DNA of 64,000 nucleotides from Bugula neritina (taxonomy: Eukaryota; Animalia; Bryozoa), in contig OZ037770.1 of assembly GCA_964035545.1 (NCBI GenBank), positions 13,444,642 through 13,508,641 on the forward strand, in the 5' to 3' direction. The notes beneath the pieces were generated by a model that made no database searches, was not told the DNA's origin, and worked only from the letters and a program-made list of their open reading frames with translations. A program made the translations under genes and the position numbers. Shown here piece by piece: positions 1-47,101 of the stretch. Positions within the stretch are counted from its first letter, which is position 1. Every line of letters begins with the position of its first letter.

Positions 1-3000
1 ATGCCCCATATGTCACGGTCAGTTTGTTTATCTGGTTTGCTAACCAAAAATAGGAAAACAAAACATGAAAAATATGAAAAAAGATGAGCAAATGCTAAAC
101 AGGAATTTATTAGAAGTAGTATTATTACTACAGGCCTCAAATTATTATGCTGTAAAATTAAACAATTTAATTGTAAGTTTAAAGGTTTATTTTCAATTAG
201 GTATAAGTTTTTACTTTAGCTGCACTCTTGAAACACATCTGCCAAAAATATTTTACCCAAATAAGACCAATGAAGCATTCATATAAAAGTGACAAGCCCT
301 AATACAAGAATGGTAAAAGTAACGCTAAGGTACAAGTGGTCAAGGGAGTACAATGTGAAAATTGTTACCATAATCATGATTGCCCTCTATTATAACCTGT
401 GTCACAATACTGACTGTGCTTTGCAGTTGGATCACAATGTATGCATTTACCTAAAACGAAATAGTAAACACTATATGCATATCAATATATAAATATATAA
501 ATAAATATATATATATATATATACATAAATATATATATATATACGTATATATATATACATATATATATATATATATATATATATATATATATATATATAT
601 ATATATATATATATATATATATATATATATATATATATATATATATATATATATATATATATATATATATGTATATATATATACGTATATATATATATAT
701 TTATGTATATATATATATATATATTTATTTATATATATTTATATTTATATATATATATATATATATATATATATATATATATAAGTAATGAGTAATAATA
801 AAGTTTGATTTAGAACACTTTATTACTCATAGTTTCATGTGCATTGCATATACACAATTTTCATTTGAAATGTTGACATTTTATCTGAAGATGGCGTATA
901 TACAATGCACATGAAACTATTAGTAATAAAGTGTTCTAAATCAAATTTTATCGTTCATTACTTTTGTCACTTTGCTCCGCTCTGCATTGAGCTCTTTTCA
1001 GTTTCTAACTACACACCATTACATATATATATATATATATATATATATATATATATATATATATAAATATACATAATGTAATCTATAGTAAAATAGAGAA
1101 AACAGAAAGTACATTGTATGCGGCTTGTTGTAAGCAGGCATCGGTGTTCCAATTTCCATCAACTGCATGCCCAGGCACCTGGTTGCCATAAACCACAGGA
1201 GAGGCGTCATATACTGCACTTGCAGAATCTGAATAATAAACATTTTGACAAATCAAATTTATTATTTTCATCTTATAGCACTAACACTACATTATTATAG
1301 CATGTTAATATGCTCTATTATACATTTTATCTGATATATGAATTATATAAAATATGCATAATAATGAAAAAATATTTTATCTTTCCAGTAGTTCAACTAG
1401 ATCAGTTTTCAGAGATGAGCTCAATCCAATAGAACCTTTTTATTTAGAGCTAAAATTTAAGAAAGTTAGTCATTTGGGTTTTCTTTTCAGTAAATGCATA
1501 GATTTGAATGTAAAATAACAAGATTTATGTTGATGTATTTACCAAATGCTAAAACAACAGGTTGGGGAGCCGTAGTTCCATATACTTTAACTTCTCTCAT
1601 GCAACACCATCCACTGTCATCTCTTTGAATTTTTACATATTTGATAAGACCAGAAGTGGTACCGTATACAGTGACTGTGTCGGAGGTTGCTAATGCATCT
1701 CCAGTGTTACCAAAATAGTTGTCAAGGTCATTTGTCGATGCCCCATATGTCAAAGTCAATTTGTTTATCTGGTTGGCTAACCAAAAATAGGAAGACAAAA
1801 TATGAAAACTATAAAAAAGATATACAAATTCTAAACAGGATTTTATTAAATATAGTAATATTGCTACAGGCCTCAAACTATTTTGCTGTGAGACAAAACA
1901 TTTTAATTGTAGGTTTAAAAGTTTATTTTCAATTTAGTAAAAGGTTTTACTTTAGCCTCGCTCTTGAAATACATCTGCCAAAAATATTTTACCCAAACAA
2001 GACCAATGAAGCATTAAGATAAAAGTGATTAGCCCTAATATATGAATAGTAAAAGTAACACTAATGTAAAAGTGGTCAAAGGAGTACAATTTAAAAGTTG
2101 TTACCATAATTGTGATTGCCCTCTATTATAACCTGTGCCACACTGCTGGCCAAGCTTTGTAGTTGGATCACAACGTATGCATTTATCTAAAACAAAGTAG
2201 TAAATATTATATAAATATAAATATAAAAATATAAAATATATATATATATATATATATATATTTTTATTTTACAAAAGTGATGAGTAATAAAACTTGATTT
2301 ACAACTGCACTTTATTACTAATAATTTCCTGTGCATTGTATATACAGAATCTTCAGATCAAATCTTAACATTTTATCTGAAGATTGCGTATATACAATGC
2401 ACATGAAACTGTTAGTAATAAAGTGTTCTAAATAAAATGCTAATGTTCATTACTTTTATCCACTTTGCTCTGCTCTGCATTGAGCTCTTAGATGTATATA
2501 TATATATATATATATATACATATATATATATATATATATATATATATATATATATATATGTATATATATATATATGTATATATATATATATATATATATA
2601 TATATATATATATATATATATATATATATATATATATATATATATATATATATATATATATATATATATATATATATATGTATATGTATATGTATATAAT
2701 GTAATCTATAGTAAAATAGAGAAAACAGAAAGTACATTATGTGCGGCCTGTTGTAAGCAGGCATCGGTGTGCCAATTTCCATCAACTGCATGCCCAGGCA
2801 CCTGGTTGCCATAAACCACAGGAGACGCGTCATATACTGCACTTGTAGAATCTAAATAATAAACATTTTGACAGATCAAATTTATTATTTTCATCTTCTA
2901 GCACTAACACTACATTATTATAGCGTATTATTATACTCTATTATACATTCTATCTGATATATAAATTATATAAAATATGCATATTAATAAAAAAATAATT

Positions 3001-46800: not shown

Positions 46801-47101
46801 TAGCAATATTACTACATTTAGTAAAATTCTGTTTAGCATTTGCTTATCTTTTTTTATTTTTTTTCATGTTTTGTCTTCCTATTTTTGGTTAGCAAACCAG
46901 ATAAACAAATTGACCGTGACATATGGGGCAACGACAAGTGACCTTGACAACTATTTTGGTAACACTGGAAATGCATTAGCAACCTCCGACATAGTCACTG
47001 TAGAGGGTACCACTTCTGGTCTGGTCAAATATGTAAAAATTCAGAGAGATGACAAAGGATGGTATTGCATGAGAGAAGTTAAAATGTATGGATACCAATA
47101 A
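28828..47101 (+). CDS. Gene 3: secreted PAN/apple-like + Thr-linker + 6 tandem F-type-lectin/F5-8C-like domain protein (~989 aa)
   Basis: Exons: 28828-28890 (signal, [21 protein letters not shown]); 29254-29593; 29903-30018, 30217-30298, 30621-30854; 31170-31285, 33166-33247, 33577-33810; 34130-34245, 34768-34849, 35636-35869; 36152-36267, 37768-37849, 38171-38404; 38718-38833, 39137-39218, 39538-39771; 40085-40200, 40383-40464, terminal 46893-47101 (..MYGYQ*). Total 2970 nt. The 3' UTR start resembles that of gene 2. Confidence 0.85.
31388..33040. mobile_element. 5'-truncated Penelope-like retroelement in inverted-duplication form (GIY-YIG endonuclease + 3' UTR/pLTR on both strands)
   Basis: Arms 31388-32112 and 32275-32998 are reverse complements. 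ORF 32381-32662 ([33 protein letters not shown]) is a PLE-type GIY-YIG domain. Hammerheads at 31437-31476 (-) and 32911-32950 (+). Flanked by (TA)n. Confidence 0.88.
34911..35355. mobile_element. MITE with 15-bp TIR GTTGCGTTTATACCT, flanked by TTAA
   Basis: Perfect TIR; the segment is absent from the paralogous introns (TTACTTTTACTATTC). Exact TSD length (TA/TAA/TTAA) is ambiguous. Confidence 0.8.
36436..37660 (+). mobile_element. Decayed 5'-truncated Penelope-like retroelement (RT thumb/linker + GIY-YIG) with hammerhead at 37476-37529
   Basis: Fragments [72 protein letters not shown], broken by stops and frameshifts. 3' motif ATCACC-CTGACGA-GAGGCA..TGCTAC-GAAA-CAAATTTG-TA-GGTGAT. Flanked by (TA)n. 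Confidence 0.85.
41326..43102 (-). mobile_element. Tc1/mariner transposon with disrupted transposase
   Basis: 27-bp TIR CAGTG(C/A)TGTGAAAAAGTTTAAGGACGC, TA flanks. Minus-strand fragments: HTH region ([20 protein letters not shown]), [34 protein letters not shown], with frameshifts and stops. Confidence 0.92.
43464..45501 (-). mobile_element. 5'-truncated RTE-clade LINE (reverse transcriptase), one nonsense codon near the C-terminus
   Basis: 582-aa ORF 45462-43714 with [46 protein letters not shown]. It continues in frame after a TAG ([22 protein letters not shown]). 3' tail of GGTGTGAA repeats; possible TSD ATATAGTAATATA. Confidence 0.92.

Follow-up and report, generated by a model that had tools for sequence, protein, structure and literature searches.

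A probable cluster of PAN-mucin genes with tandem F-type-lectin-like domains in Bugula neritina, apparently evolving by exchange among three-exon cassettes

Sperm bindin of the oyster Crassostrea gigas carries one to five tandem F-type lectin domains, each of which is split by an intron (Moy et al. 2008, reviewed in PMC5712786). The mid-domain intron is highly variable in size, microsatellites occur in the introns, and a retroelement resides in the gene. The repeats recombine, and their number differs and is set by splicing (PMC5712786). Two sequence motifs are described for F-type lectins, namely H-X24-R-X-D-X4-(R/K) for fucose binding and h2DGx for cation binding (PMC5712786). A search of the literature on Bugula lectins produced nothing specific. 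Our analysis concerns a stretch of 64,000 nucleotides (nt) from the bryozoan Bugula neritina, termed the window (GenBank assembly GCA_964035545.1, contig OZ037770.1, positions 13,444,642 to 13,508,641), in which a cassette of three short exons, called A, M and B, recurs in tandem in three genes. On balance, the locus is probably a lineage-specific cluster of PAN-mucin-(lectin-like)n genes that evolves by exchange and is probably functional.

As in bindin, the cassettes appear to form tandem lectin-type domains that are split by a size-variable intron. The intron between A and M measures 182-1880 nt, is mostly microsatellite, and contains (TA)n or (CA)n in all 15 units. The locus also bears a retroelement, represented by a reverse-transcriptase open reading frame (ORF) in an intron of gene 3. 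However, the cassette comes from another phylum, its domain is too diverged for family models, and the His/Arg/Arg fucose triad, which several repeats of bindin retain, is missing. The cassette genes have a PAN head, a mucin stalk and three exons per domain. Unlike the single-copy bindin genes, they form a palindromic cluster of three genes and a remnant, and their units show no sign of positive selection (dN/dS 0.70; multi-allelic codons). An earlier note on this DNA had called the system possibly undescribed. This goes too far, because the mechanism it proposed has already been published for oyster bindin (PMC5712786). What is new here is the phylum, the PAN-mucin N-terminus, the extra intron, the loss of the sugar triad and the palindromic multi-gene layout.

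The searched assembly comprises 216 Mb, and the cassette locus lies on contig C6 at 13.44-13.49 Mb. Cassette copies were located by a substitution-only fuzzy search with one window-derived reference copy per exon, taken from unit 5 of gene 3 (38718..39771, plus strand). Comparisons of the cassette with Pfam, the PDB and protein databases were made exon by exon, with A, M and B taken individually; exons were joined in scripts solely for translation, substitution counts and short-motif tests. The window is AT-rich (26-34 % GC) and crowded with (TA)n and (CA)n microsatellites.

Exons A and M are each present in the window in 15 copies, of exactly 116 and 82 nt respectively, with AG..GT on both sides. 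Exon B also has 15 copies, comprising 12 internal ones (exactly 234 nt, AG..GT) and three terminal ones; the last exon of every gene is a shorter B variant that ends in ..VYGYQ-stop. In genes 2 and 3, the terminal B ends with YGYQ-stop at 26769 and 47101. The terminal B of gene 1 starts at 39 and is cut by the window start, and the left flank (L001) supplies its stop codon and AATAAA signal. Exon A begins in phase 1 and ends in phase 0, M leads from phase 0 to phase 1, and B begins and ends in phase 1, so that a unit amounts to 432 nt (144 codons). Translation of each of the 14 complete units yields 144 residues with no stop, and splice dinucleotides are intact at 88 of 88 sites in the window. 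DNA identity among exon copies is 92-97 %, which places the cassette copies far beyond chance. The M-B and B-A introns are steady at about 320 nt, except where a transposon has been inserted. Fuzzy search and translation thus bear out what the earlier note had read from the sequence, namely a three-exon cassette occurring 5+4+6 times with intact AG/GT sites and a phase-1 start and end. Its invariant exon lengths apply to A, M and the 12 internal B exons, but not to the terminal B variant.

The copies are distributed as 5 units on the minus strand in gene 1, and as 4 and 6 units in genes 2 and 3. The gene models are as follows, in window coordinates.

Gene 1: 9456 to beyond 1, minus strand, 5 units
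9105..9456, minus: gene 1 head exon, PAN/apple plus poly-Thr linker; ends ..VALPF + G, phase 1
7128..8806, minus: gene 1 unit 1; A 8806-8691, M 7771-7690, B 7361-7128; AG/GT at all sites, open frame
4772..6810, minus: gene 1 unit 2; A 6810-6695, M 5413-5332, B 5005-4772
3167..4456, minus: gene 1 unit 3; A 4456-4341, M 3811-3730, B 3400-3167
1543..2851, minus: gene 1 unit 4; A 2851-2736, M 2186-2105, B 1776-1543
1..1228, minus: gene 1 unit 5; A 1228-1113, M 450-369, terminal B from 39 past the window start
Gene 2: 11325-26769, plus strand, 4 units
11325..11667, plus: gene 2 head exon, PAN/apple plus poly-Thr linker; PAN_1 match
11998..21752, plus: gene 2 unit 1; A 11998-12113, M 12662-12743, B 21519-21752
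22064..23484, plus: gene 2 unit 2; A 22064-22179, M 22842-22923, B 23251-23484
23798..25181, plus: gene 2 unit 3; A 23798-23913, M 24538-24619, B 24948-25181
25497..26769, plus: gene 2 unit 4; A 25497-25612, M 26150-26231, terminal B 26561-26769
Gene 3: 29254-47101, plus strand, 6 units
29254..29593, plus: gene 3 head exon, PAN/apple plus poly-Thr linker; aligns with the other two heads
29903..30854, plus: gene 3 unit 1; A 29903-30018, M 30217-30298, B 30621-30854
31170..33810, plus: gene 3 unit 2; A 31170-31285, M 33166-33247, B 33577-33810
34130..35869, plus: gene 3 unit 3; A 34130-34245, M 34768-34849, B 35636-35869
36152..38404, plus: gene 3 unit 4; A 36152-36267, M 37768-37849, B 38171-38404
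38718..39771, plus: gene 3 unit 5; A 38718-38833, M 39137-39218, B 39538-39771
40085..47101, plus: gene 3 unit 6; A 40085-40200, M 40383-40464, terminal B 46893-47101
L001 7240-7770 (C6:13441939-13442469), minus: orphan pair of an intact M (AG..GT) and a terminal B, 2 kb beyond the window start

The layout is roughly palindromic, with the remnant, gene 1, gene 2 and gene 3 in this order. Genes 1 and 2 stand head to head, gene 3 follows in the direction of gene 2, and the remnant lies on the side of gene 1. The 3' flanking sequences of genes 1 and 2 mirror each other with 92 % identity. The family of three genes described before thus stands, but the orphan M and terminal-B pair has to be added to it. 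This pair is without an A or PAN exon, its terminal B has a one-codon insertion, and a 492-nt (TA)n tract precedes it. The pair looks like a deleted mirror copy of gene 3, because the piece adjoining it matches the region upstream of the gene 3 head exon. It is either the remnant of such a copy or an alternative 3' end of gene 1.

Several introns depart from the common size. The A-M intron of gene 1 unit 2 (1281 nt) contains a tandem repeat of about 271 nt and (TA)n; the M-B intron of gene 2 unit 1 is enlarged to 8775 nt by repeat insertions; and that of gene 3 unit 6 (6428 nt) carries the reverse-transcriptase ORF (43714-45462, minus) and a transposase-like helix-turn-helix (HTH) ORF (42401-42751, minus).

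The exons evolve more slowly than their surroundings. Their p-distance is 0.057, against 0.105-0.114 in adjacent introns, and no indel occurs in 398 aligned columns of 14 copies, whereas about 660 intron columns contain 18 distinct gap runs. The absence of indels and the lower divergence of the exons therefore argue that reading frames and splice sites are maintained. Since purifying selection keeps the frame of the exons open and their splice sites intact, the genes probably have a function. Among units, the synonymous divergence dS is 0.08, the nonsynonymous divergence dN is 0.056, and dN/dS is 0.70. Codons with three or more alleles number about 10, compared with an estimated chance expectation of about 13. 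Since there is no excess of multi-allelic codons, nothing indicates positive selection.

Exchange among units is supported by several features. Cassettes are as alike within a gene (identity 0.890) as between genes (0.887), and the nearest relative of a unit shifts among its A, M and B segments. In its A, M and B segments alike, gene 1 unit 4 has gene 2 unit 3 as its positional counterpart. A tract of 709 nt is 100 % identical between units 5 and 3 of gene 1 (window 1-641 equals 3362-4002, plus 68 nt beyond the window start) and may reflect a recent gene conversion. It ends inside the (ATAT)n of an A-M intron. Two rearrangement boundaries, those of the conversion tract and of the orphan M-B pair, coincide with A-M microsatellites, which may promote exchange.

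The even cassette identity, the mosaic units, the 709-nt tract, the diverged heads described below and an outside relative of only 57 % identity indicate concerted evolution of the cassettes, apparently through unequal crossing-over and gene conversion that extend over the entire locus and also act between inverted genes. The unequal crossover proposed in the earlier note, together with gene conversion, is thus supported by the mosaic units, the tract, the equal identity within and between genes and the mirrored 3' flanks. The word "diversified" suits the cassettes badly, however. These are homogenized (89 %) without multi-allelic excess, and the differences lie in the PAN heads.

Some 300 nt upstream of each array lies an exon whose PAN/apple domain is followed by 17-30 threonines and which ends in ..LPF+G in phase 1, as B does. 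With the PAN_1 model (PF00024, cut-off 21.4), the head of gene 2 scores 29.7 bits (E = 5.9e-7), that of gene 1 scores 22.6 bits, and that of gene 3 falls just below the cut-off at 20.6 bits. Six cysteines are invariant across the three heads, which are mutually 31-37 % identical. Cassette identity has stayed near 89 % throughout, in contrast to this drift of the PAN heads, and the difference is attributed to exchange among units.

When the three upstream regions were compared for conserved 5' exons, the PAN/linker exon alone was found. A heuristic scan yielded one candidate signal-peptide exon per gene.

11036..11122, plus: candidate signal-peptide exon, gene 2; MAS.. start, hydrophobic core, donor TGG|GTAAGT, phase 0
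28828-28890, plus: candidate signal-peptide exon, gene 3
9935-9858, minus: candidate signal-peptide exon, gene 1

Every gene has its own stop codon, and an AATAAA signal is present for genes 1 and 2; in gene 2 it lies 24 nt downstream of YGYQ-stop. Because the proteins stop directly after the last repeat, they are expected to be without a membrane anchor, and they are presumably secreted.

The unit is likely a strongly diverged F-type-lectin-like domain, to judge from profile comparisons and intron positions. Like members of the F-type lectin family (1K12; striped bass FBP32, 3CQO; PF22633 / SMART FTP), the cassette has AVDG followed by N, H, D or I, a C-terminal ..EV.VYG strand and colinear blocks. 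The cation-binding h2DGx motif is represented in all 15 A exons by this AVDG block. Unlike the family, the cassette has no above-threshold model match for any of its exons and no fucose motif, and it has an extra intron in the first half of the domain.

The Bugula genome provides a close standard for comparison. A genome-wide PF22633 search gave at least 150 exon matches, with 150 of 263 candidates scored, and none of these 150 matches lies on the cassette; a genome-wide PF00754 search likewise produced no match on it. A profile of 18 canonical first exons matches FBP32 (E = 2e-27), lectinolysin, eel agglutinin 1K12 and a pneumococcal fucolectin-related protein, and the matches span E = 2e-27 to 1e-13 (structures 3CQO, 1K12, 3LE0 and 2J1R).

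In hhalign comparisons, exon B aligns with 18 canonical second exons at a probability of 77 % (P = 2e-5); the alignment spans 42 columns and stops precisely at EVEVYG. Exon A aligns with canonical first exons at the AVDG block (P = 0.0012). Non-colinear control pairings gave P = 0.19, 0.017 and 0.22. A shallow second-exon profile of 4 sequences (P = 0.0024) was superseded by the 18-sequence profile. In exon M, the V-x-x-V-x-x-V-x-I strand pattern of the canonical ..V.C.VWAVNILNR segment appears, by eye, to be kept. Language-model neighbors of exons A and B all belong to the galactose-binding-like clan (scores 0.80-0.89), which we take as leads only.

Gene structure points in the same direction. 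Canonical F-lectin modules consist of two exons with phase 1 at all four boundaries (loci L005 and L003), and their internal intron lies, in phase 1, two codons past NR plus one base (six ILNR-class exons). The intron between M and B is also in phase 1 and lies within one residue of this position. All 18 canonical first exons lack an equivalent of the phase-0 intron between A and M. We infer the fold of the unit from these comparisons.

The lectin pattern recognized in the earlier note is therefore retained as to a probable F-type ancestry, on the strength of exon B, exon A and intron phase and position. Exon by exon, the cassette is not matched by PF22633 or PF00754, and the fucose-binding motif occurs in 0 of 14 complete units, even when the spacing is relaxed to X24-27. 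In 12 of the 14, no Arg is present from residue 1 to residue 118. Because the fucose motif is absent from all 14 units, "lectin" refers here to ancestry and not to a demonstrated activity. Likewise, sugar binding, and above all fucose binding, is not to be assumed, since the His/Arg/Arg triad is gone while AVDG is kept.

A number of points weigh against the interpretation of the locus as a functional PAN-mucin-lectin cluster. A Pfam hmmscan of exons A, M and B singly found no PF22633 or PF00754 match at E <= 10, and phmmer and hmmsearch comparisons of exons and exon profiles with PDB sequences found no true match. The PDB matches that did appear (for example, Fab chains, Symfoil and Nup153) were attributed to chance. 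Exon M, which is too short, gave no profile alignment to canonical exons, and a genome-wide search with the shallow canonical second-exon profile did not reach the cassette. An AlphaFold2 prediction of exon B alone was uninformative (predicted local distance difference test, pLDDT, 42.8). The dN/dS of 0.70 is fairly high, so that residue constraint is only moderate. The perfect 709-nt tract could also be an assembly artefact, and the signal-peptide exons are heuristic candidates.

Given that no exon reaches Pfam or PDB thresholds, that exon M fails to align and that the carbohydrate motif is absent, the unit might instead be an orphan beta-rich domain unrelated to F-type lectins, with its AVDG and EV.VYG likeness convergent or due to chance. 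The control pairing at P = 0.017 also means that the noise floor of such short profiles is not negligible. However, this reading has to set aside two independent colinear profile matches (P = 2e-5 and 0.0012), an intron phase and position equivalent to those of canonical modules, and the fact that exons A and B each point to the galactose-binding-like clan. We consider it doubtful.

Dense clusters of canonical F-lectin exons were observed on C3 at 7.1-8.1 Mb, C5 at 0.46-0.52 and 1.23-1.33 Mb, C4 at 19.9-20.0 Mb, and C8 at 5.1-5.5 and 9.2-10.4 Mb. The cassette locus shares with these clusters a two-part phase-1 module, a tandem arrangement and exchange between neighboring genes. However, the domains of the canonical clusters are recognizable, whereas the cassette locus has a PAN and mucin N-terminus, no transmembrane or signaling exon, and a domain sequence that is found nowhere else in the genome. 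When exon B, and a profile of all B exons plus the database sequence P0001, were searched against the whole assembly, 16 matches were obtained, all of them at C6:13.44-13.49 Mb, even at E <= 10. The cassette is confined to one locus of the genome.

Outside this genome, the only true relative that a HMMER search of exon B against 1.84 billion representative proteins brought up is P0001. This 84-residue ORF lies on a 624-bp ENA metagenome contig, is 57 % identical and has its own poly-Thr tract. Two further matches of exon B in this set were rejected as repeat-protein artefacts. A word-index search with exon B gave no match, and no spliced cassette product was found among the 1.84 billion representatives.

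Under the interpretation that we favor, the proteins of the three genes would have no membrane anchor and would consist of a PAN/apple head, a mucin-type stalk rich in threonine, and 144-residue domains in 4-6 tandem copies. The domain would descend from an F-type lectin domain, itself hugely expanded in this bryozoan genome. It would have kept its phase-1 boundaries and the internal phase-1 intron between M and B, and would have acquired the extra phase-0 intron between A and M. The arrays would then change through unequal crossing-over and gene conversion among units, within and between genes. The proteins most likely serve as multivalent binders or adhesives outside the cell, with specificity perhaps provided by the head and avidity by the repeat number.

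A different possibility, raised in the earlier note, is that the locus is a generator of diversity, in which alternative splicing among interchangeable exons and unequal crossover yield proteins that vary in valency and contain chimeric domains. Oyster sperm bindin would be the parallel. It is arithmetically true from the phases that any A can be joined to a later M, and any M to a later B, without loss of frame. However, frame compatibility is not evidence of regulated splicing, because it follows automatically from tandem duplication and is common to the ordinary F-lectin modules of this genome. The size-variable, microsatellite-rich mid-domain intron does resemble that of the bindin gene (PMC5712786), copy number is unequal among the genes (5, 4 and 6), and the orphan M and terminal-B pair would be usable only via splicing from an upstream A. 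Yet no spliced product occurs among the 1.84 billion representatives, each gene has its own stop (with AATAAA in genes 1 and 2), and the cassettes are homogeneous (89 %), with dN/dS of 0.70 and about 10 multi-allelic codons where about 13 are expected. Such a generator is therefore judged unlikely.

A more specific version makes the locus a bryozoan counterpart of bindin, in which exon skipping and microsatellite-mediated recombination within the extra mid-domain intron would equip individuals with different numbers and chimeras of the repeats on three PAN heads. We regard this as unlikely to a similar degree. The same holds for its further suggestions that the proteins act in gamete recognition, larval settlement or colony (allo)recognition and that the orphan pair serves as an alternative 3' end used through splicing.

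That the genes are decaying or silent duplication products (pseudogenes), or in part an assembly artefact of a repetitive region, is very improbable: dN/dS of 0.70, long introns with transposon insertions and the perfect 709-nt identity between two units would fit, but all 45 window exon copies are open and invariant in length, with 0 indels where about 13 would be expected at the intron rate, all splice dinucleotides are intact, exons evolve at half the speed of introns, and protein differences of 5-18 % between pairs of units mean that these are not collapsed or duplicated reads.

If expressed, the favored PAN-mucin-(lectin-like)n genes would add a new architecture to the very large F-lectin repertoire of this bryozoan. 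They would also provide a second independent case, after bindin, of recombination-shuffled tandem lectin-type domains with microsatellite mid-domain introns. The combination of divergent heads and homogenized tails (31-37 % versus 89 %) may be useful for understanding how gene conversion stays confined to part of a gene, and the cassette may represent a lectin domain that is still constrained despite the loss of its sugar triad. Practical interest is moderate, as many such clusters exist in the genome. It would rise sharply if cDNA or population data revealed combinatorial isoforms or copy-number polymorphism.

Beyond the cassette genes, ORFs in the window include reverse-transcriptase, transposase-like and rhodopsin-type G-protein-coupled receptor sequences, which mark the stretch as animal DNA. 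An Rfam scan of positions 1-47200 at gathering thresholds found no family. Within gene 1, the tandem repeat in the A-M intron of unit 2 (5448-5993) has a period of about 271-275 nt and 99.6 % identity. The 8.8-kb insertion in the M-B intron of gene 2 unit 1 (12744-21518) contains similar ORFs in opposite orientation at its ends, for example at 12885-13156 and 19546-20024, and is probably a large transposon with inverted ends; one of its ORFs gave no match in Pfam. The M-B intron of gene 3 unit 6 holds, at 41917-45462 on the minus strand, a 582-amino-acid RVT_1 ORF (E = 6e-33) that adjoins the transposase-like ORF (HTH_23, Sleeping-Beauty-type HTH).

A neighboring gene on the minus strand, at 52000-58000 (for example, 56238-56492 and 55273-55500), is distinct from the cassette genes and has a ..NWWQVYL.. 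motif. Its exon at 56238-56492 shows a sub-threshold PF22633 match (25.6 bits, E = 1.9e-5) and also the only weak PF00754 match of the window. These matches suggest that a lectin-like gene of the canonical type adjoins the cassette cluster. In or beside this gene, at 53711-54411, lies a pure trinucleotide tract of 600 nt that reads as poly-Val, poly-Thr or poly-Leu/Pro, depending on frame and strand. Farther on, at 60784-61743 on the plus strand, is an intronless ORF of 319 amino acids for a rhodopsin-family G-protein-coupled receptor (7tm_1, E = 8e-11).

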